Under the pieces are notes generated by a model. The model was not told the DNA's origin. It ran no database searches and saw only the letters and a program-made list of their open reading frames with translations. 64,000 nucleotides of DNA from Phaeosaccion multiseriatum (lineage: Eukaryota > Protista > Ochrophyta, other classes): contig OZ218958.1 of the NCBI GenBank assembly GCA_965112735.1, forward strand, positions 2,666,001 through 2,730,000. Reading direction: 5' to 3'. Positions within the stretch are counted from its first letter, which is position 1. Every line of letters starts with the position of its first letter. The position numbers and the translations under genes are program-made. Positions 13,380 through 52,430 of this stretch are shown in pieces.

Positions 13380-14183
13380 TCAATACACCAGTCTCGCCTC
13401 TCTCTCTTGCGTAAGCTTCTTGATCGTCGTGTGCTGCGCTTGAATATGGCTGTGGGTGGTGGTCTTGAAACGCTCCATCCTCTCCATCTCCTCGGCGTGC
13501 CTCTCCGCCCGCGCCTCGCACGCGCCCACCTCCGCCTCCAACTCCTCCACCCTCTCCCGCAGCCGCTGCTGAGCCACTTCCCCCTCCCTCTGAAGGTCTC
13601 CCATCTTCTCCCGCAGCTGCTGCTGAGCCGCTTCTCCTTGTCTTCGAATCTTCTCCTGCCCGCCCCTCAGCTCCTCCCCACTCCGCCTCTCCCTCTCAAG
13701 CTCCTGCACGGCCTGTTGGGTCTGCGCGGTGGCATGTGCAAGCTGAGCCTCGAGCTGACGGATCAAGAGAGTGTTTCGCTCCGTCTCTCGCCTCTCGACC
13801 ACTCTCTCGCGGACAAGTTTCCTGTGTCACATGCGATGAAGGTATGGTAAGGGGAATGAGAAAGATAAGGAGAGATCGACCAAAAAGAGGCATAGAGGCC
13901 AGCAAAAACAAGGTCAGACGGGTGACAACGACGGCAAGAGAAAGGCAACAGCAGAGACTGGGGTGTGGGTGATGGATAGATATGTAGACAGACAGATGGA
14001 TGGGTGTTCACTCACTCACCCACTCACTCCCTCCCTCACTCTCTCAAGCAGACAGTCAGTGAGTCAGTTCCTCACGCACTCACTCACCTGTTCTCCTCCA
14101 TCACAGTGACGAGCTCCCGCCGCAGGTCCTTCACCCAGGCGCTCTCCTGGCCCCTACCCTCGTCACCTCCTCCTCTACTACTA

Positions 14184-14220
<37 letters not shown>

Positions 14221-14412
14221 CTCGCTTGGCGGTCCCTCTTGCTGCCTGGCAGGAGGAGCACTCAGTGCCTTTCACGCCTTCCTCGTTCTCTTCCTGGTCA
14301 ATGTCTACAGCCTCGCCATTCTCACTCTTCTCTGCCCCAGCCTCGATTTCGGTGCTCGTCATGCGCACCAAAGGAGCTTCAGTCCCCTCTCCTGCCTCCT
14401 TGTTACCGCCTC

Positions 14413-14449
<37 letters not shown>

Positions 14450-17400
14450 GGCTTGTCGTTGTTGTTGCATCACAACCTCGACGTCTAGCTCTTCACTCGC
14501 TCGCCCCTCTTTCCCCTTCTTCTTCCGCTCCTTCTCCTCCTTCTCCTCCTCTGCTGCTTGATCCAACCCCTCTCTCGAGAGGGACGCACCCCTTCCTGAG
14601 CACTGCCGCTGCCCCTCATCGGCGAGCAACGCCCCCTGCAGTGTTGCAATTTCCATTTTCAAGAGCTCGAGGGCCATTCGCCGTGCAAACCAGCTGTTCT
14701 TTCGGAAGCTGCCAAGGCCACTTGCACCCCGTCGCAACGTCACCCCACCTCCCTCACCTCCTCCTCCTCCTCCTCCTCCTCCTCCTCCAACACCACAAGC
14801 ACCATCAACAGGAAGGGACGGGGTCTTGATGCTTGCAAAGTCCAGGTACCTCTCGACCCCCTTCAGCAACTCAGCATCCGTCATACCCTTGCACAGCGGC
14901 GCGAAGAAGGCCAAGAATTGACAGCGCCGCACCTCAGCCGTACGGAGCCTCTCGTCCGTCACATAGGCCAGGGGAAGCATGAGGCGATCGACTGTGGCAG
15001 TGCTGAAGGCAGGGTAGACGCATCGGGCAAAGAAAACCAGCTCCACCCGATCAACCGCACCAATAGCAGCAGCCCCAGTCGACCCCATCTTCTCCCGCTC
15101 CCACTCTCGCTGCTGCTGTTGCTGCTGTGTGGAGGAGGCACCGGGGTCTTGGGTGGTAGGAGGGGCGATGGGTGTGGCGTGTGTGGCGGGAGGCAGACCC
15201 GTCAGCAGCACCCGCAGGACGTTCAGGAGCAAGTCTCTCTTGCCCGTAGATAGTGCCTCGGCCGCTTTCCACCCTTCCAGCAGCTGCTCCACCTCCGCCA
15301 GTCGCGCCTCTTGCTGCTGTATCACCAACTGCTCACCCTCCTCCTCCCCATCCTCCTCCTCCTCTATCCACCGCCTTGCTTGCTCTACTGCCCCCTCCTC
15401 CCTCTGCTGCTGCTGCCATCGCTGCCCTCCCACCCCTCCCCCCCTACCGTTCGTCGTGCCCTCAACAAAGAAAAGTGCCTGCCCCGCCCAGTGTTCGAAC
15501 TCGCGCCTGTCCATTGCGTGGCCGTGGCCGTGCAGAGGACTGACTGCTCTCTCCAAGTCTGCCTCCGTGCAGGGCACCATCATGTATGCGGCAAAGTGTG
15601 TCACTGTACCAATGTCCAGCAGCCCCTTCCTGCCGCTGCTGCTCTGCCCACTCAGAAGACCAAACGCCGCATCTAAGACAGCCTGTTGGCGCTGCTGCTG
15701 CTGTATCACCAACTGCTGCTGCTGCTCGCGGTCGTGGGCAGGAGGGGGAGGCGGAGGAGGGGGCGCAAGCCCTCTTCCTCCTCCTGAAGCAGTGCTGCTC
15801 CCTACAGCGCTAAAGCTCCCCGACCGCCAGCTATCAGCGGACGTAAAGGCTTCTATATCAGCATTGACATCGGCATCGGCAGCAGCTGACTCATCCGAGA
15901 GGGGCTCAGTCCATTGTCCTCCTCCTCCTCCTCCTCCTCCTCCTCCTCCTCCTCCTCCTCCTCCTCCTCCTCCTCCTCCTCCACGCTGGCCCTCCTCTTC
16001 TGTGGTCGCTTCCGTGAGTAGAGACTCATGTTGGCTCCCCGCTCTAGACCCAGTGTTCGGTGCCAGAGCCGGTCTGGGAGGAGACCGAGATCGCGGGCCT
16101 TCTTCCTCCTCTTCTCCTCCGAATGCCGCGATCCAAGAAGAAGGAGTGGCCCCTGTGTGCCCTCCCAACCCCCTGCTGCTGCTGCTGCTGCTACTGCGAC
16201 TGATGGTGGTGTTGGTGGTGGCGGTCGCGGCAGCCGGCTTGAGGGCCGCTCCTCGACTGCTACCATGCAGATCGTGCCTGCTGCGACCTACCGGAGCCGC
16301 ACCTGTTGGTGCTACACAGCCATCCCCGCCGATGTCGCCAGGAGTGGGGAGCTGATTGTCCGTCATGCGAGCCAAGGGGGGCCGGACGGGTGATGGGCCT
16401 TGTCCTGATCCTGGCACTGAGGAGGAGGAGGCGGGCAGCAATGTGTCCAAAGCGTTAGGGATGAGTGCTCTCTCCCTCTCTACTTCCTTCCTCGACCTTG
16501 CGCTTGAGCTGAAGGAGGCGGATGCGCTGCCGCTGCCGCTGCTGCCGCTCCTGTTTCTGTGGGGTAGTGAACGCTTCCGTGACGAGGTGACCTGCTGCTG
16601 CTGCTGTGGTCGCTGCTGCTGATGTCGCGGTCCCTCCAACCCCTCCTCCTCCTGCTGCTGCAGCTGCCGCCACTCCGTCTCTTCTCCCTCCCGACTGGGC
16701 AGCCTCGGAGTTGTGGTGTTTTGGTGCAAGCCCCGATACACCACCCTCCCCCCGGGCAGCGTTACCTTGGCACTACCACCACCACCACCACCACCACCAC
16801 CTTCTCCAGCAAAGCGCAGGGACTCCTCCTCCTCCCCCTCCTCCTCCTCCCTCGGCAGAGGGGAATGGAGTGAACCTCTGACAGGGACTGTGGCCGACAA
16901 GTCCTGCCCCCGAGTGGAGGAGAAAGACGTGGGACCTTCTTCTCCTTCTCTTTCTCTTCTTCTCTCGTCGTTCAGTCCGCCGCAGGCCGCACCCTCCGGG
17001 ATCCCGCCCCCCGGGATTCGGATCCGCATCGCCTCTGCCACCGTCCTCGCTGCGACCTCTCTCCACCGCCCCGCCCTAGTCCCAGCTCGGAGACGCACCG
17101 CCGCCCCCCTCGGGGTCAGCGTCAGCAGGTCCTCCTCCCCTCTCTCTGCATTGCCATCCATACCCTCCTGCTGCTGTTGCTGGTGGTGGTGGTGCGGACG
17201 AGGGGACAGCGATGAGAGCGAGGCACTCCACCCCATGTCTGCCGCTGCAGGACCAGTGATGGGAGCGTCGCCAAGGGCCTGCTGTATATCCAACTGCTGC
17301 TGCTGCTGCTGCTCCTGCTGGTGGCGATGGTGGAGGTACCGGCTGCTCGCCCTCAAAAGGGGGTTCCCGCTCCTACTCCCACTCCTTTGCCCCCCCATCC

Positions 17401-20099
17401 GTTGATCATCCCGCTGCTCGGCGTGCGCAGTAAACCTCTCCAGCGCCCTCCTAAACCACTCATCGGACAAGGGGGCCGCCAGCTCTGCGAGCATTCCCTC
17501 GAACAGAGACAGACCCGACCTCCAGCACCTCCCCCCCTGGGATGCCTCCGTCAGCATGTCCAAGTAGCGTTGGTTTCTGGCGTCTGGATGAGCGCAGTCT
17601 GGATCCACGCACTCCCAAAGGTAGTGAAGCAGCTCAGCGTCCCACTGCCCTCCTGTCCCGCCTGCCCCTGCCCCTGCCCCGGCGCCTGTCCCTGGCCCCC
17701 CTCCAAAGTGATGGCCGCTGCTGTTGCCTCCTCTATTGAAACTACCGCCCCCTGCGCCACTGCCCCCCCCCCCACCCGAGCCCGATGGCGTTACGGTGAG
17801 CGCTCCTGTGCCTTGTGGGCTGCCGCTGCCGCTGTTGCCACCGTTGTACCCGTAAGCCTGTACGATGGAGGCGCTGCTGCTACTGCTGCTGTGACTGTGA
17901 GTGCGACTATGGCCACTACCACCGCCGCTGCAGATGAGGTGGTGGTGCTCTGCACCGCTGCTACTTCCTCCCTCCCCTCCTCCTCCTCCTCCTCCCTCTC
18001 CTCCGCTGACCTCCTTGTGCACGGCCTTGAAGACCATCTTGATGAGTTCTCTCCTCTCCTGCCCGGCCTGCGTCCACGCCTCAAACCGCCTAAATCCCGC
18101 CTGTAGATGAGCACGGCTGGCCTCAAAGCCATTTTCCTTCTTCTTGTTCCTCCGCTTCTTCCCATCTGTCTGCCTGCCGCTGCTTGCGCTCGTGTTGGAA
18201 TCCTCGACGGACATGAGCAGCTGCTCACAAATGGCGACAAAGAGGTCTTGCGTGATGGTCATCATACGGTGCTGGCCTGTAACCGACACACAAGACCACA
18301 GCACACGAGCACGGAGCAGAGAAGTCCTTCGAGTCAGTCATTGAGGTTCTTATTGACTTAAAGTCAGTCATTGGGGGCGGTTTGGGTGGGTCAGAACGCT
18401 ACCCGCCGGCGAAAAAGGAGACTCACGCCAATCAGTCAACAAGAGATGGATCGATAGAACGATAGTTAGTAGATGTAGTGCGAATGTCCTCCTCGCCTCC
18501 TTCCTTCCTCCCTCCCGCCCCCTGGCTTGCTTACTCCCCTGCCGTTTCCCCACACCCACACCCACCTGTTCTCGAGATCTGAAGGGTCTGGCACACGAGA
18601 TCAACGTCCCAATCCACCCCTCCTCCCAACATGCGGCCAAAGTCCACAACGTCGGTGATGTAGATATGGCCCGTCTCGTGGGGGTCCATGAGCTCAAAAG
18701 CCCTCATAAAGAGTCCTGTTCGGGGCCCCAAGGCCATAGGCTTGCTGCTACTGTTGCTGTTGCTCTTGTCGGTCAGAGAAGAGTACTGCCCCGCATCGGC
18801 AGGAACATCATCATCATCATCATCATCATGGGCCTCGTCATGGACGCTGGAGCTGCTGCTGCTGTCGCCCCCCACACTCCTCGCGGAGTGGCTCTGCTCG
18901 ACGGTGGCGTCCAGGCTACTCCTGTTGCTGCCGTTGCTGCCCCCCGAGATGGAGCTGAAGAGACTCACCATACTCTCACCGGAGGTGATGCCTCCACCCC
19001 CTCCTCCTGACCTGCTACTACCCTTGCGGGACATCTTTCGCTGACCCACCGCCCCCCCCATGCCTCCTCCTCCTCCTCCTCCTCCTCTGCTGCTCCTGCT
19101 GGTGGTGGTGGTACCCGCCAGTGCCTCGGTCAAGGACCCCCCCGACGCCGGCCTCGTCCTCCTCTTGCTTCCCCTTCGCGCCCCCTCTCCACCCCGCTGT
19201 GGTGTATCCACTACTGCCGCCAAAGGGCCCTCTGCCGCAAAGGTTTCCACTGCAGCCTCCTCCTCGACCCCGACGAGCTCGTAATTCACCAGGATACGCA
19301 TACCCTGCTGGTGCCTCCCTGTGGTCGCACCCGCCGCTGCCGCCGCTGCAGCTGCCGCTCGACCTTTGCTCTTGTTGGGCGTCTTGAGCTCGAGCCAACG
19401 CAGGGTGGTTGGCTCCTGCTGCTCCGGCTGCTTGTGCACTGGGGGCCGCTTCGCCAGGTCAGTGAGGAGGAGAGAGGCAAAACCCAGCTTCTCGTCCGAC
19501 AAGTCATTGACTGACGCGCTCCAGAGCGTCAACCTCACCCTTCCAGAGGCACTAATGGGCAGCACAAAGTCAATAACAAAGGCTTGCCCCCACTCTGGAG
19601 TTGTTGTCCTGAACTTGGTCTTGGTCCTCCAGGAGGCCACCGCTGCTGCGGATGCCGCTGCTGTCGCTGCTGGTGTCGCCGTCTCTGGTGTTTTTGGCCC
19701 ATTCCTCGTGGATAGAGTGCTACTATTCCTTCTTCCTGCACGACTGCCGCCGCGACTTGGGGCGGCGGGGGAACAGCTCCTCCCCAAGGTCGAGCTTTTG
19801 CTCCTCCGCTTCTCCAGGCCCGTGTCAATGGTATTCTCTGCCGCCGTTATTCCTGGCGAGCCTACCCTCTTGGCCACTCCTCCTTCCGTGCCCCCAAAGG
19901 ATCGCCCAAGTGGTGAAGCTGAAGTGGCGGAGAGGGTTGAGCAAGCTCGCCCCTCCAGCTGGTTGATAAGCTCAACTTGGACATAAGGGTTGGGGACAAA
20001 GAAGGGGCTATTGGGTCTCTCCAGCTGTGTGGCTTTGCTGATCGTCAGCCGCAGTCGCCCACAGCCAGGCTCCAGTGGCTTCTCGGTTTGCTGTGGCAT
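13380..20099 (-). CDS. Very large low-complexity protein with N-terminal C2 domain, degenerate EF-hand-like segments and C-terminal coiled coil; exons 20099-18566, 18276-14088, 13821-13380
   Basis: C2: GRLRLTISKATQL..PNPYVQVEL..WRTKTKFRTTTPEWGQAF..LWSASVNDLSDEKLGFASLLL. EF-hand-like: AFELMDPHETGHIYITDV. Intron phases 1 and 2 join the three long ORFs in frame. Confidence 0.75.
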
Positions 20100-20405
20100 A
20101 ATCGTTGCCGTTGGGTTGCCCCGGTTGCCTATTGCTCTCGAGCTCGGATCTCCCTGGCCATGCTCATCACGCTGACCGACAAGTATCAAGCCCACTCTGT
20201 ACGCAAGAAGCTGCCCTGAAGCCTCACCTATGGTGTAACAAAGCAGCTGCGCAAGAATCAAAATCTCGACCAAATCACAAACAACAAACAACAAACTAAC
20301 GTCAAAATTACGTAACTTTACGTAATGATATAGAGTCATACAGGCAGGGAAACAGCACCCCAAGCCCCATCCCCATCAAACAAGAAGCACTCCAAACAAA
20401 TAACC

Positions 20406-23183: not shown

Positions 23184-26100
23184 TCACACGTCAAACTCAT
23201 CTCCCCTGCGATGCAGTCCCCAGTGCTCATCCCCCTTACTCTTGGCTTCCTGACTCCGTTCGTTGAGATTCACAGAAAACACTGCCTGAGCGCGGGCGTG
23301 GAGGTCTGCAAGGGCTCCGAAATTGCCCACCTGGGGAGGGCAGGGTAGCAAGCAGTTGGTGATACAGCGGCAGCAGCCGGGGGGGGGGGGAGCAGGTTTG
23401 GGAAGTGCATGGTATGCGAAGGGACACATGATAGACGAAAGGAGGGGTGTGGGTTAGGTTAGCAAGACCCCCTTTCCCATACACCTCCATCCGCACCCAC
23501 CATCCCACACATCTCCACCCACCTCCCACCCACCCACTGAATCATTGACTTACCATTGCCTCCATCTCCGCCAGCTTGTGGTAGAGCATGGCATGGTGCG
23601 GGTCAGCCTTGAGCCCCCTCTCAAAGAGCTCTCGGGCCTTGTCAATCCGCCCCACGGACTGCTCCATCTTGGCGTAGGCGCAAAAGAGAGGTCCGTGCAA
23701 AGGGTCTGCTCGCAGCCCGAGCTCGAAGATTTTGCGGGCACGGTCAATCTGAGGTAGAGAGAGAGAGAGAGTCAGAGGGAGATATTTAGAGGGAGAGAGA
23801 GAGAGAAGGAGAAGAGAGACGGGGAGACGAGACAAGAGGGAGGGCGTGGGAGAGAGAGGAGGAGGAGAGAGAGAGAGCGTAGGAGGGAGAGGAAGGAGGG
23901 GGGGAGGACCGACGAATGGTTGTTTAGACTTTGGGAGAAAGGGCTTCACTACGCTAACGCGCGCATCAACACGCCGACAAACATACAATCACGTACTCAC
24001 GCACGCACACACGCACGCACGGGCGCATGCATACACTCATCTACCGGCTCTCTCCCTCAATGCACGCACACACACACACACACACACGCACACGCAAACA
24101 CGCAAACACACGTACACACACACGCACCTTTCCACTCTCTCTCTCAATAACGGCGTATATAACCCAACACGGGCCGTGATTGGCGTCCTTCTGCAGGCCC
24201 TCCTTGATGATCTTCCTCGCCCGATCCAAGTTCCCCATTCGAGTCTCCATCACTGCCCACGCTTGGTACAAAAACACGTGCCCGGGACAGCGCTGAATGC
24301 CTGCCTTGAGTAAGGTCCGGGCTCTGTCTGTCTGATCGAGGCTAATCTCCAGCATGGCATAGGCTTGCCACAGCGCTCCGTGGGTGGGGGATTCCTTCAA
24401 CCCAACTTCATAGAGCGTTCGAGCCACGTCGAGGTTCCTTTCTCTGAACTCCATCACACCCCACGCCTGCCAGGCTTGCGCGTGGGTGCGGTCGGCTTGG
24501 GTGGAGGCCTTGAAGAGCTCTCGGGCTTCGTCGAGGTTTCCAAGTCGTGATTCGACAAGGGCCAGCCCGAGGAGGAGAGGGGCGTTCATGGGGTAGCGGT
24601 GGATGCCCTTGGAGAAAATGTCTCGGGCCTGGAGATGGTATAAAGAGAGGGAGAGAGAAGAGGGTTGGGTGAGGGGGGGGGGGTGGACAGAGACAGAGCC
24701 AGATCAATCGAAGGAGTGCACGGTAGGTCAACAGAGTCCACGCACAACCACACTCACGCACACGCGCACCTACACACGCACCCCCCCCCCCCCCCATATG
24801 CACACACATCCACACACCTCCATGATCCGATGTCCGTTGAGCATGAGATAGCCAAGTGAGTGCAGCAGGAAGCTTGTGTCGTCCCCACTGTCCCTCTCCA
24901 GGCCCTTGCTAAAGAGCGCCTCCGCCTCTACGGTATGCCCTTGCTTGGCCTCCAGTGCTCCTAGCCCTTGCCACACGCTGGCCATGTGGTCGCATCGAGC
25001 CTCGATGGCCCGGCGGTAAATGCCCCGTGCCCGCTCCTCGTTGCCTCTCCTGTAAAGAAGGAGGAGGAGGAGGACGGGGAGGGAGAGGAGGAGGAGGTGG
25101 TGGAGCAGGGGGAGGAGGAGGGTGAGCACGACGTTGATGTCCTTGTTTAGCTGCGATGACTACATTAGCAAACAACGAACATAAAAAACGAAGACATTGC
25201 ATGTAAAACTACACAAATCATACTTGTTTGGTCTCACCTCGCCTCCATGGACGCATATGCGTTGTAGAGTGGGCCGTGCGAGGCGTCCACGCTAATGCCC
25301 AACTCAAAGAGCTTACGGGCTTGTGCCACGTGTTTATCCACCGACATCTTGAGGTCGCTCACCTCTTTGTCGGTGAGGGGAGCAAGCTTTCGTAAAGGGA
25401 GTGAAAAGGAGGAGGGAAGGGGGAGGGAGGGTAGCAGTGGTTAGAGTAGGCATCGAAGGAAGGAAGGACGGGCGACTGATGACAGAGGTGGGATAGGGGA
25501 CACACACACCACACACACAACACACTACACACACCTTCAGCCCCTCCCTGTCCTGACACCCCCTGTCCTGACACCCCCTGTCCTGACGCCCTCTGTCCTG
25601 ACACCCTTTATCCTGACACCCTTTATCCTGACACCCTCTGCCCTCACACCTGTCCTGACACCCTCTATGCTGAAACCCATCCACTGTCCTGACACACACC
25701 CCCCCTCCACAAATAACCCACAACACACACCTTCAGCCCCTGCCTCGCCGCCTGCTGCTGCACATCCAGACTGTGTCCGCCGTTGCTGTTCCTCCTGAGC
25801 TTCATTTCGTCTCGCTGGGCAATCCGGTCTTCCAGGAGGGCCCAGGAGACGTAGGCAGGGGCCATGGGGCGTATCTCGATGCTCTTTTGGTAGTACTGAA
25901 TAGCCGAGTCAATGTACCCGCGGCGGTTCTGTTTAGGGTGTGTGCGTGCGTGCGTGTGTGAGGCGGTGAGTGCACGTGCAGAGCGAGGCAGAGCATACAA
26001 CACTCACCCACACACACACACACATACACACATTTGTCATGGGAGCGAAAATGGGAGCAAGCGAGAGACAGCCGACAGCCCCTCCCCCGGCCCTACAACC

Positions 26101-26757
26101 TACATCCACTCCCACACCTACATACACCCACCCATACACGCGCACGCCCACACACACACACACACGCCCACACACACTTACCTCGATCAAGCCCAGGGTC
26201 TGCAGAAGCGACTGCTCCGCCGGGAACAAACGTCTCGCGTCGGAAACAATCTTGAAGGCCTTGTCAAGCAAAGCCGGGTTGTCCTCAGACACCGCCGTAC
26301 GGGCCAAAATGGTACCCCACATGTTGAAAAGTTGGGCATCCCCGTGGCGAAGGTTCCGCGCCCCTTCCAATGTGAGTAGGGCCTCGTCTGTATCTCCTCT
26401 GCGCAGCTGCAGCTGGGCCACTGCGATGTGCACCTTAACATTGGTAGGGTCACATTCTCGAGCCTTGAGTAGAAGCTCCTCCACACGCACAAGGTCTGGG
26501 AAGGTACTGCTGACACCGCCACTTCTGCTACCACCGCTGGAGAAAAGGGACGTTACATCGGCGCCACCTGATATTGCGGCTGCCGCTGTCTGTGCTGGCC
26601 CGCTGCTGTTTTCAATACTACCACTACTACTACTACTACTACTCGCCGTCGTGCCCGGAGGAGGAGGGGCGCCTCTCCTGGCTGCTGCTGCTGCCGCTGC
26701 CAGTCGCGCCTCTCCTCTCGACTTCCGCTTCCGTCTCTGTTTCCCCCCCTTCCCCAC

Positions 26758-26793
<36 letters not shown>

Positions 26794-28139
26794 GCTGCTA
26801 CTGCTGCTATTGCTGCTATTGCTGCTACTATTACTACTGCTACCACTGCTGTTGATTCTGCTGTTGCCTGTGACCGATTCCTCCACACGCGCCCACGCCA
26901 TGTAAACATAGGCGTGGTCTCCCCTGTCCAGGCGCGGCAGATTCGCTCGAAACACTTCTCGGGCCTCCTCGATTCGACCCCGCTCCGCCTCCATCTCTCC
27001 CAATGCACAGACAATTTGCGCTTGCGGCCTCCAGGCAAGGGCTTGGTTGAAGAGGCGGCTCGCCATATCAAAGTTCTTGGCCTTTTGCTCAAGGAGGCCG
27101 AACGCGTGGCACACGTAGGCATTGCCCGGATCTACTTGCAGACCCTGCGTATGTGTGTGTGAGTGAGAGGGGGGGGGGGGGAGGTGAGGGGAAGAGAGAG
27201 ACAAGAGAGAGATGCGAAGGAAAGAGGACAGACGCAATCATGATGGGTGAGAGATACATGGATAGATACATTCTGTCACGTGAGCAAACACCTCCTTTTA
27301 CCCCCGGTCACCTCAACCCAACTTACCCGCTCAAAAAGCTCCCTCGCCTTCTTTATCTTCCCATTCTTGTGCTCCATCACCGCCCACGCCTGAAGCAAAT
27401 GCACATTGCGGGGGCACTGCGCCGTGGCCTGTCCAAAGACTTCCCTCGCCGCCTTGACCCTCCCCCTTCGCTGCTCCGTTCTCGCCAGTAGCAGCCATGA
27501 GTGCGAGTCTCTCGGACTGAGCTCCAGACACTCTCGCAGCTGCGCAATGCCCTTCTCGATGTGGCCTTGCCGCAGGTCGTGCTGGGCGTTCAAGTACATG
27601 CTCGTCACCCTTTCTCGCATCGATCCACCCTGTCCCTGCTCCTTTATCGGCCCATGATGATGATGATGCTGCTGGTGCTGGTGCTGGTGCTGGTGCTGCT
27701 GCTGCTGCTGCTGCTGCTGCCCAGAGTGGCCACCCGCTCCTCGCGCTACTCCTCCTTCTCTTCCTGCTGGCGCTCCTGATGGTGGTTGTGGTGTCCTTCT
27801 TGGGAGGAACTGGGCAGAATTGGCCACCATCGTCAGGCGCACCGCATCTCGCGGGGCGTAGCTGCAGGAGCTGCTACTGCTGCTGCTCCTGCTGTTGAGG
27901 TTCCTACACTCGCTTCTGCCACGAATGCTGCCCCTCCTCCCCCCAGCCCCTCGGTGACCAGCCGCAGGGAGGACAGCGGAAGAACGGGCGCCCAAGGATC
28001 CCACGAATGCGAATGGGTTGGCATTACTTCTGGCGTTGCTCTCCTCCAACCGTCCTGCAAAGCAAGAGCCTGAGGTGGGCAGCAAAGTGGCCGTGAGCCC
28101 CACTGCCGCAAAGCTGCGTCCTCCCTTCTTCACCTTCAT
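23184..28139 (-). CDS. Plastid-targeted HAT/TPR-repeat RNA-binding protein, Mbb1/HCF107-like; multi-exon
   Basis: Many HAT repeats (NVHLLQAWAVMEHKNGKIKKARELFERGLQVDPGN; HAQAWQAWGVMEFRERNLDVARTLYEVG); hydrophobic leader followed by AFVG and a Ser/Arg-rich transit region. The 3' end is uncertain. Confidence 0.8.
25548..25700. repeat. Intronic ~15-bp minisatellite (CTGTCCTGACACCCC-like, about 8-9 degenerate units)
   Basis: Directly visible tandem units of tcctgacaccc. Confidence 0.85.
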
Positions 28140-45899: not shown

Positions 45900-46171
45900 T
45901 CGGCCCTGGACAAGGTTACAGTGTGCGCCGGCCATATAATCAGTAATCAGACCGGCTGACGCCAATAATCAGAAATCAGGCCGGCGAGGGCGGGTGATAG
46001 TAATCAGTAGCTAAGGGCTGGTCATAATCAGTAATCAGACCCGGCTGGCGCCGGCCATAATCAGTAATCAGGCCCGGCTGGCGCCATCAGGCCGGCTGGC
46101 GCCGGCTGTAATCAGTAATCGCCGGCTGCGCCGGCCGTAATCAGTAATCAGATAACCTTGTCCAGGGCCGA
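45900..46171. mobile_element. MITE-like element: perfect 19-bp inverted repeats enclosing about 7 TAATCAGTAATCAG units separated by GC-rich GCCGGC-containing spacers
   Basis: TCGGCCCTGGACAAGGTTA (45900-45918) and TAACCTTGTCCAGGGCCGA (46153-46171) are exact reverse complements. Internal units start at 45937, 45966, 46001, 46025, 46058, 46109, 46138. No clear target-site duplication. Confidence 0.6.
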
Positions 46172-46489
46172 AGAGGAGGAGCAGCCTTATCAGAACCTGG
46201 AACCTGGAACCTGGGTCGCCTCAGAACCTTGTCTCAGGGGCCGAGTGTCGTTTCGTGTTGATCACCCCTTGAAGTCAACGAAGAACAGTCCGCGCCCCAC
46301 CAAAGAAAAAGAAAAAGCTTTTTCAAGCATTACATCCAGCTCACAGCGGCCTCACTAAAGAAGGGGCAACCTCCAGCCGAAATTCTTTAGAAACGTGGAG
46401 CAGCAGGCGCCAGGTTTCTTGCCCCTTTCGTAGCTAAGCAAGAAGTGATGATACGATCATTCTTTGGAAGATGGGGGGGGAGGGGAGAA

Positions 46490-49400
46490 ATGACAGATGT
46501 GGACGAAGAAAGGGAAGGGATGGTATCGCTGTTTAAGTGCACCGGAGGAGATCAATGGACGGACAAGAATGGATGGAACGAAGTGTGCCCCAGCAGACCA
46601 TACTCAGATCCTTTCTACTACTGTGATCCAAACAAGAAGGGAGGTATACAAAGTCTCATCCTCCGCCATAACGGACTCAAAGGTGAGTGACGCGTTTGCT
46701 CTCACGGTCCTGGCTGAGGGGGTGTTAAAGGGGGGACTGCTGCTGCCCTTGTCCACACACAGGCACGATACCGGCCGAGCTGGGCCGATTACAGGCGCTG
46801 GAGTGGCTCTACCTTGATGGCAACAAGTTGACAGGTGGGTGATAGGCATGATACCATCCACATATCGTCCCTTCTTCTCATGTGGTCACAGTCCCGAGGG
46901 GCATTTTTAAGACGTGCCGCTGTTGCCCCTGTTCGCAGGCTCCGTACCGGCCGAGCTGGGCCGATTGCACGCGCTGAAGGACCTCCGCCTTAGTGGCAAC
47001 GAGCTGACCGGTATGTCACAGACACGCTACCGGCCACCTTGGTACATCCTTTCTTCTGCGGCCCACTGTACCACCTACCGTATCCTCTCCCCTTGTGTTC
47101 TCTCCCTGGCTGCGACAGGCACGATACCGGCCGAGCTGGGCCAATTACAGGCGCTGGAGCGGCTCTACCTTCATGGCAACAAGTTGACAGGTGGGTGATA
47201 GGCATGATACCATCCACAACTGTCCCTTCTAAGACGTGTTGCTGTTGCCCTGGCTGGTCCAAAGGCACGATACCGGCCGAGCTGGGCAAGTTGCACGTGC
47301 TGACGCACCTCTACCTTGATGGCAACAAGTTGACAGGTGGGTGATAGGCATCATACCATCCACACATCATCCCTTCTCCTCGTGTGCTCATAGTCCTGAG
47401 GAGAATATATTAAGACTTGTTGCTGTTGCCCCTGTTCGCAGGCTCGATACCGGCCGAGCTGGGTAAATTGCACGCGCTGGCGATCCTCTACCTTAACGGC
47501 AACAATTTGGCCGGTGGGTTGGCAAGGGTCCCTAAAGTATTCGACAACGAAGAAGATTGTGGCAGTCACTCATACAATCGCGACAAGTGCTGTAGTGTGT
47601 GCGTGTTGTCCCATTCCAAGCTCATCCCTTCGTCTCTCGGGTTGCATGTGCAGTTTTAAACACATCTGAGGTGAAGCACTGTCTCACTGTCTCACACGTT
47701 AGCGACGTCACGCGTTCTGTGCTGTTTCAAGTCTGACGGATTAAGAGGTGCGGTGATCTAACCCCCCCCCCCCTCTCCTGCCCCTGTCTGTTCCTTCCAC
47801 CTCAGGCAGCATTCCTGCGGAGCTTGGTGAGCTCCATAACCTTGGCGTTTTGAGCCTGGAAGGCAACCAACTCACAGGCTCGATTCCTGTGGAGCTTGGG
47901 TCTCTACTCAGCCTGACGATAGCCTCTTTTACTCCCGGGAACCCTTTTCTCTACGGTAAGCCCTCCTAGATGGTCCGCGAAGCCTCTTCACAGCTGTTCT
48001 GCTTGCTTGAATGACTATCCTTTTTCTCCTTACTCCATGCGATTGATTCGACTGTACTTCGGTTAAGCAAACCACGAGTACACTCCCCTGTGCTCGAGGA
48101 GGAGAGGACACCCCGCTCTGCCCTGGCCCCCTTCGTAGTAGGTGCAGCAATTGGTTGGCGTGACTGACTCTCTCTGCGCGACGACCTCTCTTCTTTGCGC
48201 GGCCCACAGGCAACCCCGGTAGGTTGGAAGGCCGGAACAAAGTGCAAATTTGGCAGAGAGACCTTCCGCGGACGATGGCGACGATCGAGAGAGATATAGC
48301 GCGCGACGAGCTGCAGATCGAGAGGGCCTGCTTCCTCACGCTCGAGGCTGAGCTTGAGCAGGAGAGACGAGATAGACAGTCTCTGACAGCACGACTCGAC
48401 ACGGCGAACAATAGCGATGCCGCTCTGAGGGCCAAGCTTCAGGAAGAGGGTGAAGCAGCGACCTTTCAGCGGACCAAGCTTGAAAGAGAGAACGCACTTC
48501 TGAAGGCGCAGCTGGAGGAGGCGCAAAGAGCGTCGATGTCCTCCGGGGTGGGCATGCTGCTGGCCGTCACGGACGCTGTAGCGGACACCAGAGGGCGCAT
48601 GCAGAAGGAGCACAGCACTGAGGTGCAGATGAAGCATCAGAGTGGGGGCATTGAGGAAAGGGCCCGACTTCCGACAGCCTCCTGGAGGGGTCTGCTCAAG
48701 GAGATAGAGTCCATGTCCAAAGGCGAAGGGACGCGGGACAGTGGCACAATCGGGGCAGAGGCTCTGGCTGAGGTGGTGCAGGAGGAAGAGCGGGCCACTA
48801 GGCACTGGGACTCTCTCAAGATGCATCAGAACATACTGAGGAAGTGGAGTCCGTCTGTGAGGAGGGGGGAGACTCGGACGGGAGAGGTCAGCATCGATGA
48901 GATCCAAGCGGCGTTGATTGGTACTGACGAGGCGCCTTATGCTGGGAAGAGCTTGGCTGAGGTCGTGGCTGCTCGAGATGGGCAGAGGAGAAGCCTTGTG
49001 GACGCGATGAGCCAGTTCCTATTGACATACGCGAGGCAAGAGCTGCCCAGCAAGGTCGACGCCGAGAAGAGAGAGATTGAGAAAGTAAAGGGTCTGCTAG
49101 CACCGCTGAGAGAATTCCAAGGAAGATTCGAGAAACTGCTGAAGAAGGACAAAGGGGAGGGCGAGGGCGTCGATGATAGCTTCGATATTGGTGCGCTGTG
49201 CACAGAGGCGCTGCAAGCCGTGAGGCAGTGGGAGGCAGCTCACGACCTCGCTGCCCTCGCGCAGGGTACTGACGGGCGCTGCAGAGAGCTGGGGGAGGCG
49301 CTGGTGAAAACGCTGGGGTGGCTGGGAGGCAGAAGCCCTGGAGCCGAGGAGCGAGCAGGAGCTGTGGGAGAGAGCGAGAAGTGGACGGCGACACACGGCG

Positions 49401-52400
49401 GTGCATTCAACTGGCGGTGGAGGCACAGGCGGCGGTCGACGACGAACAGAGGGGCAGAGAGGGCACCGACCTAAGCTCTTTGCTCGGCGACCTCCCGCTG
49501 ATTGCCGTCCTGAAGTCTGGGGAGGGCCTGCTCGCTTACCACCGGCAGAGGGTGGCGACAATGGAGGGACTGGGCACCAGGCAAGGCATCTTACTTGAGG
49601 TGCTTGCTCAGCAGCAGGAGGTACGTATCGCCTTTCACAACGCGCTCTGTTGTAGTGTTCCGACTCTCTCTCTCCCTCCGCTGGAAGATACTCGACGCAG
49701 AGGAGCGAAGGTGCTTCACGACGTGTGGCTCTGATGGAGTCCACTGCGTGTACCGCTGTGCACCTCCCTTCTCTGGAGAGGTGACACACTCTAACTAAGG
49801 CTTCCTCTGCCCTCCAGGTGGTGTCCAGCGCGTGCTACCCTCCCGACAACGGCGGACTCAAGGCCCTCCGCGGAGGCCTGCACGACCTCCAGGACGAGAT
49901 GGAAATGCTGAAGACCCGGATCCTCCAGAAGCAGCGCCGGGGAGAGCCTACTGACGGTCTGCAGGCAGAGCTGAAGCGCGTCATCTCTGACATCAATCAG
50001 AAGGTAGGGCGAGTGCTGTATGGGGTTGGCTTAGTGGGTCCGAAGAAGAGCTCTTGATCATCCTCTCTTGGGCACGCAGAGCCGCGCGACTGACGTCTCT
50101 CCTCTCCCGTTGGCTGTGCGGCTGTGCTCCCCTGCCCAAGTAGAAGCTAAGCCGGCGCATCATGGCGGAGGAGAGTAAGCTGTGTCGCCTGGCGCAGGAG
50201 CACTACCCCGAGCTGCTGCTGGAGGGCAGCGAGTGGGGCAAGGAGGTGCGCATTGACGTATCCTCCGTCGGGGCAGAGGCTCGGCGCCTGGGCTTGCTGG
50301 CGGATGGCCGGACGCTGCAGAGCTTTGCCAAGCAGACGCTGCTCTCCACGCAGGTGGGCAGGCGTGTCTACCTCGTGGAGGAGGCAGGGGACTCCATCGC
50401 AGAGCAGCAGCAGCCGCTCCGGCGGAAAACGGTGGTGAAAGAGTTCAACTTGAAGCTGGAACGGGACATGCGGCACTTCTACAGACAGGTGCGTCTGGCC
50501 TGTCCCTCTCATGCATGGCCGTGATGTACTGAGAAGTGAGGCCAAGCAAACGCACTCACGTCTGAGCCTGCTCTCCCCTCCTCCTCACCTCCCGCTCTGT
50601 GACCAACAGGTTGCCCTGCTGCACCAGCTGAGGCATCCCAATCTCGTGGGCGTGTGTGCTGTGTTCCAGGACCTCACGGTGGGCTCCTGCTACCTGCAGA
50701 TGCCGCACTATGGGGGAGGAGATCTCCGAGCTTGGATGGACGCCAACCCCGCCACGGCCAGAGATGCCGTCTTCTGCGCGCAGGTGTGCGTGTGTATGTG
50801 TGTGTGTGTGTGTATGTGTGTGTGTGCGTGCGTGCGTGTGTGTGTGTGTGTGCGTGCGTGCGTGTGTGTGTGTGTGTGTGGACAGGGGGTGGACAGGGGG
50901 TGGACTTTGCGTGGATCAGAGTCAAGCACCCCGCCCGAATGTATGTTCAGTTCTATCTATCCACTGAGCGTCTCTTCGCTTCTGTCCGCCGTCCGCGCCT
51001 CGCAGATTCTGAGCGACGTGTTGGCAGGGCTGCACCACCTTCACGCAAACGGCCTCGTGCACTGCGACCTCAAGCCCTCCAACGTGCTGCTCACCACGCG
51101 AGGCACCGCCGTGCTGTCGGACATTGACGGGCTACGCAAGGAGGATGATTTGGCCAGCAGCATGGGATCGACCACTTTTGTAGGGGGCATCCAGGGAACT
51201 ATGCGCTATCTCCCTCCAGAGCTGCTGCAACCGCCAGGCACGTGTGTGGTGAAGAACATCATCACTCCAAGCGTCGACATGTTCGCTTTCGGGAGGGTTG
51301 CGGAGGAGCTGCTGCAAGAAGGGGTGCAGCTCAGTTGGCGAAGGGGGAAAGGAGGCGACAGGAAGGAAGAGCACCGCAGGAGATGCGACTCGCTCAAAGG
51401 CTTGGTCGCTGCACTGGTGGCTGATGACCCGGCCAAGAGGATGAGCAGCTCGGACGCGCTGGCCCACCCTCTCTTGGTGGAGCTCGGTAGGAGGGCCGCG
51501 GAGGGAGAGGACAGGGTGAAGCAGCGCAAGCTCCAGTGCGTCATCTGCTTTGACACATTTCTCGCTGCGGAGGGGGTGCAATGCGACGCGGAGCACTTCA
51601 TATGCGACGAATGCCTGGAAGGGTACACCACGGCTAAGAGCGAGCCTGCAGAGAGGAAGGCGCTGTACCAGGGAGGGCTGCAATGTCCCCAGCCTGGCTG
51701 CGCAATGCCCTTCGAAGGACACACCATTGCTAGCCACGTGTCCGCCTCCGTGTATGAGGCATATCGCACGGCGCTGAACGCGGGGCTGGAGACCAAGGTT
51801 GTGCAAGACATGGAGAGAGTTCACGAGGTGAGGATGCAGGTGGGGGTGAGGGTGGTATTGGCTGCGTTTGGTGTGTTTATGCCGTTCTGACGGGCGAGCT
51901 ATTCATGTGGACTGTGTGGCTGGCGACTGTGTGGCTTTTCCTCACCGTTGCTGTCTTTCCTTGCTCGCCATTTGCGCCCCCTCGCTGAGCAGGAGAGGCT
52001 GGAGGCGATGCGCAGAGACTTTGCCAATCGATCGGCAGCCGACGCCCTCGAGGAGGAGGCCCGCCAGCACTCGCTCCGCGTCATCGAAACGGTCATCAAC
52101 CTGGCCTGCCCACGCTGCAAGCAGGCCTTCGTGGACTTCATCGGCTGCTTCGCCCTCAAGTGTGGCCGCTGTTCTGCGGGCTTTTGCGCCTTCTACCTCG
52201 CGGACTGCGGTAGGGACGCTCACAGACACTTGGCATCATGTGCTCTGAACCGGACTCGAAGTGTATGGGGCAGCCGCCACGTCTTCAAGGCCGCCCAGAA
52301 GGGCAGGAGGGAGAAGCTGCTGGCGGCCTACCTGCAGCCTCTGCGGGCAGAGATGCGCGTCAGGGTGATGGAGCTGCTCCAGCCGCACGTCAAGGGTCTG

Positions 52401-52430
52401 GGCCTCTCCATGGGAGGGCCAGGAAACTGA
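46490..52430 (+). CDS. LRR - coiled coil - Ser/Thr kinase - RING - Rcat/RING2-like multidomain protein; about 13 exons; apparent frameshift near 49405 (possible pseudogene); alternative start at 46448
   Basis: LRR N-cap [23 protein letters not shown]; plant-type 24-aa LRRs ([24 protein letters not shown]); kinase [43 protein letters not shown]; [25 protein letters not shown]; CPRC...[10 protein letters not shown]...FC. Confidence 0.85.

Follow-up and report, generated by a model that had tools for sequence, protein, structure and literature searches.

Within a 64,000-nucleotide stretch of Phaeosaccion multiseriatum DNA (the window), the plus strand between positions 46490 and 52430 carries 14 phase-compatible exons which, if joined, would encode a protein of about 1342 residues. 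These exons specify, in this order, a leucine-rich repeat (LRR) domain, a long helical region, a protein kinase and two zinc-binding modules with affinity to those of RING-between-RING (RBR) ubiquitin ligases. The gene probably belongs to a multi-copy family of single-chain proteins of the cytosol that occurs both in this genome and across protists, and in which a variable N-terminal repeat domain is followed by a coiled coil, a conserved helical pre-kinase domain of about 300 residues, an atypical non-RD kinase and an RBR-type ligase lacking the in-between-RING (IBR) domain. The features of the locus are listed below, with positions on profile hidden Markov models (HMMs) built for the family.

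46490–46682, plus strand: exon 1, with the start codon, an acidic N-terminus, the LRR N-cap and a first partial LRR; it ends in phase 1 at donor GTGAGT.
46763–46834, 46939–47010, 47119–47190, 47265–47336 and 47442–47513, plus strand: five single-LRR exons of 72 nt, phase 1, located by pattern scan.
47806–47955, plus strand: exon 7, which carries a pair of LRRs plus the end motif GNPFLYG and ends in phase 1 at donor GTAAGC; Pfam LRR_1, E 0.0025.
48210–49363, plus strand, 3′ end uncertain (49303, 49317 or 49363): exon 8, opening in phase 1 from acceptor CACAG, with a coiled-coil-like helix near 48302–48520 and the pre-kinase domain from 48875.
49304–49428, plus strand: ambiguous stretch in which the reading switches from frame 2 to frame 1.
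49429–49620, plus strand: exon 9, pre-kinase domain continued; weak collinear HMM match, positions 231–288; donor GTACGT.
49818–50003, plus strand: exon 10, end of the pre-kinase domain and a short heptad segment; HMM positions 282–355, E 1e-5.
50144–50488, plus strand: exon 11, a conserved HYPELL N-extension and the kinase N-lobe; family kinase HMM positions 72–174, E 1.7e-22.
50610–50783, plus strand: exon 12, kinase alpha-C to hinge; HMM positions 175–228, abutting exon 11.
50784–51005, plus strand: intron with a (GT)n microsatellite, the sole array within the gene.
51006–51839, plus strand: exon 13, kinase C-lobe, RING1 and the start of the linker helix; Pfam Pkinase, E 1.2e-17; HMM positions 231–358.
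51990–52430, plus strand: exon 14, remainder of the linker helix, Rcat-like zinc domain, C-terminal helical hairpin and stop codon.

The exon phases were checked arithmetically and each exon was translated on its own. The stop-free segments are rich in G and C at third codon positions (GC3 0.53–0.86) and can be joined by GT-AG introns of 65–292 nt, with phase kept across all 13 junctions; with a 65-nt intron chosen at the frame switch, the exons sum to 4026 coding nt, that is, 1342 codons, a length divisible by three. A second in-frame ATG is found at 46448, and a possible acceptor at 46433 leaves room for a further exon upstream. The maximum Kyte-Doolittle mean over 19 residues is 1.29 in any exon and the N-terminus is acidic, in line with the original prediction of an intracellular protein that has neither a signal peptide nor a transmembrane segment. 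No Pfam domain was found in the minus-strand open reading frames (ORFs) inside the gene. That prediction had also drawn attention to short introns poor in microsatellites, and we find one array in 6.3 kb against about 1.6 per kb elsewhere in the window; however, the different history that it deduced from this scarcity is without evidence, since short introns in an exon-dense gene explain it.

The C-terminal region contains two zinc modules. The first, described in the original prediction as a RING1-type C3HC4 finger (nt 51534–51698), follows the pattern C-x2-C-x11-C-x3-H-x2-C-x2-C-x23-C-x4-C and ends in CPQPGC, and its columns are near-invariant across an alignment (A1) of 38 homologues and two pieces of the window copy. 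As anticipated, no IBR lies between the zinc modules, because the roughly 85 residues that separate them hold no Cys/His pairs. The second module (nt 52107–52241) has the pattern CPRC-x9-C-x4-C-x2-C-x4-C, followed by further His/Cys ligands, and includes the GCFALKC motif that had been placed at the catalytic position of RBR ligases. In A1 the consensus of this module reads CPRC..AF.DF.GCFAL.C..C...FCAWCL.DCG.DAH.H...C, and the Cys of the GC pair is kept in at least 90% of the rows, the window copy included (candidate catalytic Cys at 52146–52148). This residue aligns on the Rcat Cys of parkin and, going by the alignment coordinates, on residue 2249 of CUL9, the catalytic Cys of that protein.

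A profile of A1 compared with proteins of solved structure gave parkin as the best match (E 2.8e-4, covering RING1 and Rcat), with CUL9 next (E 1.4e-3). The zinc pieces of the window copy alone gave weak matches to parkin and to IBR models, and the Pfam IBR and RING models stayed below their cut-offs. Weak Pfam matches to zf-CRD and zf-RING_14 likewise scored below cut-off, the literature on these names gave nothing, and both were set aside as generic zinc-finger similarity.

The fold of the module was modelled on a homologue from Tribonema (P0017:420–671) by AlphaFold2 (AF2) with the A1 alignment. In the model (predicted local distance difference test, pLDDT, 94.8) RING1 runs into a 63-residue helix (residues 83–145), after which come a small domain of zinc-ribbon type and a helical hairpin. 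In a Foldseek search with this model, all 50 matches listed were RBR ligases. Superposition with VIA-align gave, for RING1, Z scores of 9.8 with RNF216 and 7.6 with parkin; for Rcat they were 6.1 with the Rcat and following helix of RNF216, 3.9 with parkin and 3.4 with HHARI. Furthermore, a search of the ESM Atlas returned uncharacterised haptophyte fragments together with RNF14, RNF216 and plant RBR clusters. The ligase part is thereby predicted to consist of RING1, one helix of about 60 residues, Rcat and a C-terminal helical hairpin, and the alignment, profile and fold matches lead us to read it as a putative RBR module that has lost its IBR.

Likeness to characterised RBR ligases (parkin, HHARI/ARIH1, CUL9, RNF216 and HOIP) extends to a RING1 that ends in C-x4-C and runs into a helix, to the family's Rcat spacing C-x2-C-x9-C*-x4-C-x2-C-x4-C-x2-C with the starred Cys on the catalytic Cys, and to a C-terminal helix after Rcat, as in RNF216; these ligases are also the top sequence and fold matches of the module. 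In contrast to them, the window gene has the single long helix in place of the IBR, has a kinase fused directly upstream, and is scored below threshold by the Pfam IBR and RING models. MYCBP2, a RING-Cys-relay ligase, likewise lacks an IBR and runs from a RING through a helical linker to a zinc domain that carries a catalytic Cys; however, the C-terminal domain encoded here resembles Rcat and not the tandem-cysteine domain, and MYCBP2 was not among the 50 Foldseek matches listed. The plant protein KEG (RING-kinase-ankyrin-HERC2-like repeats) similarly holds a kinase, an E3 RING and repeats in one chain, but its RING is canonical and N-terminal, it has no Rcat and its domains run in the opposite order.

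The predicted kinase is present (Pfam PF00069, E 3.5e-21), and its C-lobe matches many solved kinases. The beta-3 Lys lies at 50438–50440 (VVK), the catalytic loop reads HCDLKPSN (HCD at 51060–51068) and is of the non-RD type, and DIDG occupies the place of DFG. The beta-3 Lys, the Asp and Asn of the catalytic loop and the Asp of the DFG position are thus all present in the window copy, and they are conserved in the family, for which 39 relatives give the consensus VLK, F-x-RQ, VHCDVKPxN and GDFDG. A GxGxxG Gly-rich loop is lacking throughout the family, and RQ, with Gln, takes the position of the expected alpha-C Glu; these departures are traits of the family rather than defects of this copy. 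The family kinase HMM runs through exons 11, 12 and 13 at positions 72–174, 175–228 and 231–358, and the abutting positions therefore confirm the exon 11/12 and 12/13 junctions.

An exhaustive HMMER search with exon 13 found no match above 44% identity. Among the best 150 representatives, about 52 carry the kinase, RING1 and Rcat-like modules contiguously and in the same order; the 51839|51990 junction is therefore confirmed. The proposed domain order and the RBR-like reading of both zinc modules are supported by the alignment, profile and fold comparisons above. The closest named relatives, at 40–44% identity, are from xanthophytes. Members were found in stramenopiles (the xanthophytes Tribonema minus and Heterococcus, and the labyrinthulid Hondaea fermentalgiana), alveolates (several genes of Chromera velia), Rhizaria (Paulinella chromatophora), green algae (Tetraselmis striata) and Holozoa (Sphaeroforma arctica and Pigoraptor chileana), with further members among MMETSP transcripts; a taxid in one MMETSP header pointed to a fungus and was disregarded as a truncated number. 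None of the 30 matches whose source was looked up is a brown-alga protein. These comparisons show the helical-kinase-RING1-Rcat cassette to be a real family, and one that is not specific to brown algae.

The N-termini joined to the cassette are exchanged between relatives: 12 of 39 carry ankyrin repeats and 3 carry LRRs, with Sel1, ubiquitin-like, RanBP1, MYND and PAH domains in others. LRRs and cassette occur together in single ORFs in the P0078 cluster, which includes an MMETSP transcript ORF marked complete, and in P0027; in P0009, a 4137-nt contig, one ORF holds ankyrin repeats, an N-cap like that of the window gene, LRRs and the cassette. The Paulinella chromatophora transcript P0107 starts with a ubiquitin-like domain, followed by ankyrin repeats, the kinase and the RBR-like module, an arrangement that recalls the ubiquitin-like domain of parkin.

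The original prediction did not recognise this fusion as a described family, and our searches likewise turned up neither a paper nor a curated family that covers it; source records label the relatives merely as 'protein kinase'. A survey of the ubiquitin system (PMC4327156) makes no mention of a kinase-RBR fusion, and a word-index protein search restricted to 263–836 aa returned generic kinases only.

Copy number was assessed by matching the locus to four sequencing runs, all of them DNA unitigs from one sample. A 765-nt unitig (47802–48566) has single-copy depth and zero differences from the assembly. Over the conserved exons further downstream, the summed unitig depth is several-fold the single-copy level, with many unitigs 95–99% identical, and the introns are near single-copy. 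This excess indicates that the gene is not a single-copy housekeeping gene. A transposon origin of the multi-copy signal is unlikely, as the excess depth falls on conserved exons and most introns are near single-copy. Within the 64 kb there is no second copy of the gene.

The helical region preceding the kinase had been described as about 550 residues of coiled coil. Helix is indeed predicted over about 510 residues, but features of coiled coil are limited to some 75–100 of them (nt ~48302–48520). The heptad score exceeds that of shuffled sequences only at residues 31–103 of exon 8 (0.28 for this helix against 0.12 in shuffles) and in a short part of exon 10. Single-sequence AF2 gave one confident long helix at residues 2–107 of exon 8 (pLDDT 76–88), the remainder being helix of low confidence. 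An HMM built from the 340 residues preceding the kinase in 21 relatives matched 48875–49318 (positions 71–210, E 8e-9), 49423–49602 (positions 231–288, weak), 49791–49997 (positions 282–355, E 1e-5) and 50144–50200 (positions 358–376). These matches are collinear, and exon 8 is therefore part of the cassette. Moreover, exon 10 has sub-threshold matches in six homologues, immediately upstream of their kinase. The C-terminal 300 or so residues of the helical region, and with them much of what had been called coiled coil, are thus a conserved pre-kinase domain specific to the family.

At the N-terminus, the N-cap exon, the five 72-nt cassette exons and the double-LRR exon together give eight repeats, in agreement with the N-cap and roughly eight LRRs first proposed. 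The cassette exons are flanked by AG and GT and encode repeats of the form G-x-I/V-P-x-E-L-G-x-L-x-x-L-x-x-L-x-L-x-G-N-x-L; repeat analysis showed that their introns were partly duplicated along with them. These five exons, all of phase 1, answer to the definition of type I LRR exons, with one 24-residue LRR per 72-nt exon and the motif GxxPxxLxxxxxLxxLxLxxNxLx. The domain is most likely an eight-repeat LRR solenoid assembled from one-repeat cassette exons. Among six repeats, the ratio of nonsynonymous to synonymous differences (pN/pS) was 0.93 for the exposed x positions, against 0.21 for those of the scaffold, a pattern of relaxed or mixed selection that does not prove positive selection. 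Over the first cassette exon (46650–46849) the unitig depth summed to roughly 40- to 150-fold the single-copy depth, varying with the run, so exons of this type must be very abundant in the genome. Unitigs of two runs link the first LRR exon (46781) to the intron before exon 7 (47747/47762), omitting 965–980 nt; with a flank of less than 30 nt, this skip may stem from a different locus or from an artefact of repeats instead of an allele that has fewer LRRs.

Exons of the same kind are known from Ectocarpus, in which Zambounis et al. 2012 (PMC3341825) described type I LRR exons, LRR-ROCO genes along with NB-ARC-TPR ones, and 15 LRR-kinases. Five of these LRR-kinases have type I LRR exons and are candidate pathogen receptors of a brown alga, a group that the original prediction had overlooked. 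In its main text the paper is silent on any ubiquitin, zinc or RING domain in the LRR-kinase and LRR-ROCO genes, and it reports that none of the Ectocarpus LRR proteins has a coiled coil. The window gene shares with these type I LRR genes the 24-residue LRR per 72-nt exon, the motif, and the joining of LRRs to a signalling domain in a proposed pathogen receptor. It differs from LRR-ROCO proteins in lacking Roc-COR, and from NLR/STAND receptors in lacking NB-ARC and NACHT, none of which gave a Pfam match in any exon. Brown algae also have membrane LRR receptor kinases (Phaeoexplorer preprint, 10.1101/2024.02.19.579948), whereas no transmembrane segment separates LRRs and kinase in the window gene.

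In the mechanism that we propose, the LRR face would bind a ligand, the coiled coil would gather chains, and the kinase would phosphorylate in trans or in cis and lift the auto-inhibition of the RBR module, in the manner of PINK1 acting on parkin. RING1 would then hold E2~ubiquitin, and the Rcat Cys would accept the ubiquitin as a thioester and hand it to a substrate. Activation of the ligase by phosphorylation is suggested by analogy with PINK1-parkin and with phospho-activated RNF216, in which a kinase is likewise paired with a normally auto-inhibited RBR ligase; a phosphorylated RNF216 structure was among the fold matches. In PINK1-parkin, however, kinase and ligase are separate chains, and the kinase encoded here is unrelated to PINK1. 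A role as an immune sensor, drawn by analogy, is speculation.

Several observations weigh against the interpretation of the gene as a functional kinase-ligase receptor. The E-values to solved RBR proteins are modest, the Rcat Z scores (3.4–6.1) are of a size that folds can also reach by chance, and the His found two residues past the catalytic Cys in parkin and CUL9 is absent here (C-F-A-L). With neither a Gly-rich loop nor an alpha-C Glu, kinase activity is not assured. The junction between LRRs and cassette is placed only by site quality, phase and a 250-nt spacing. No RNA run holding the locus was found, hence no junction was seen in a transcript. The frame switch at 49304–49428 may be a frameshift unless an intron spans it, and a Tyr at 52194–52196 replaces the second Cys of CAWC, a zinc-binding Cys in at least 90% of relatives. 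Finally, nothing connects the gene with infection.

It is quite possible, though we do not favour it, that the protein is intact yet no immune receptor, acting instead as a general signalling or quality-control kinase-ligase whose repeats recruit cellular substrates. The spread of the family over several eukaryotic supergroups would suit such a role, as would the ubiquitin-like, RanBP1, MYND and PAH N-termini, which suggest cellular partners; the pN/pS at exposed LRR positions does not exceed 1, and the window places the gene in no defence-like cluster. This view accounts less readily for a multi-copy family with swapped repeats of the sensor type, or for LRR exons of the cassette type known from the candidate receptors of Ectocarpus, both LRR-ROCO proteins and type I LRR-kinases. 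The kinase is, moreover, of the non-RD class, which is reportedly linked to innate immunity in plants and animals.

Whether this copy is intact bears on a second alternative, which we consider rather unlikely: within a family that is functional, this copy would be a paralogue in decay (a pseudogene), with a frameshift at about 49.3–49.4 kb and a damaged second zinc site. Three GT-AG introns could account for the change from frame 2 to frame 1, namely 49364–49428 (65 nt), 49304–49374 (71 nt) and 49304–49428 (125 nt). None is strong, the stretch being purine-rich and without a pyrimidine tract; GC3 by frame did not locate the point of the switch, and the alignment of the family varies too much over HMM positions 205–235 to settle it. 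DNA unitigs match the assembly throughout this stretch. The 65-nt candidate, however, restores the frame with sites closest to those of the gene's other introns (donor GTGGGA, acceptor CACAG), no stop codon interrupts any exon, and GC3 is 0.70–0.86 in every cassette exon. The replacement of a near-invariant Cys by Tyr fits decay, but no variant of the Tyr codon is listed among similar unitigs; a missing row is no proof of identity, and close copies may share the Tyr. The window copy may thus be imperfect.

Two adjacent genes, one for a small LRR-only protein ending at a stop at 47967 and a coiled-coil-kinase-ligase gene starting from an ATG at about 48275, are unlikely. Read-through of the exon 7 donor does reach that stop after four codons, and 22 codons past its acceptor the cassette ORF offers an ATG in frame. 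In addition, a unitig that matches from 48135 onward, 75 nt before the cassette acceptor, and diverges upstream hints at another copy with the same cassette and a different upstream part, so the duplicated unit may begin in the intron. Two genes would nevertheless leave only about 300 nt to accommodate 3′ end, promoter and 5′ untranslated region. The splice 47955|48210, by comparison, joins a good donor (GTAAGC) to a good acceptor (CACAG), both in phase 1, over about 250 nt, with the cassette ORF opening 46 nt upstream of the acceptor; a single gene is further favoured by relatives in which one ORF, in some cases transcript-derived, combines LRRs or ankyrin repeats with this cassette. From these features we infer the splice as a probable one.

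A wider view, doubtful at present, is that the family forms an unnamed pan-eukaryotic class of single-chain receptors, in which interchangeable LRR, ankyrin or Sel1 sensors would act on the chain's own kinase, which in turn activates an RBR ligase without an IBR. Such a protein would be a PINK1-parkin pair in cis and an innate immune receptor free of any NTPase, expanded in this alga by the shuffling of cassette exons.

The single-chain kinase-ligase family would be informative in several respects. RBR ligases are defined by three zinc domains, and a conserved, widely distributed IBR-less branch with its own kinase would test the purpose of the IBR; the family would also give a compact model of the control of RBR ligases by phosphorylation. 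For algae, it would add a third candidate receptor architecture beside LRR-ROCO and NB-ARC-TPR, one in which the same LRR exons are shuffled. Many protists have the kinase-ligase core, which nonetheless seems to be undescribed. The family escapes surveys based on domains, since it is not detected by the Pfam models for IBR and RING. The architecture is real and should interest both ubiquitin and algal biologists, although the fusion to the LRRs lacks proof and the immune reading stays hypothetical.

Among the neighbouring large ORFs, which include ones with C2 or TPR domains and others without a match, no cluster of related genes was found. A stop-free minus-strand ORF of 1406 residues (14084–18304) without a Pfam match lies beside a C2-domain ORF (18531–20363) and a TPR ORF (25933–27237). 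Closer to the gene, about 350 nt upstream of its start codon, 46023–46149 consists of tandem units of 29–33 nt with a GC-rich palindromic core.

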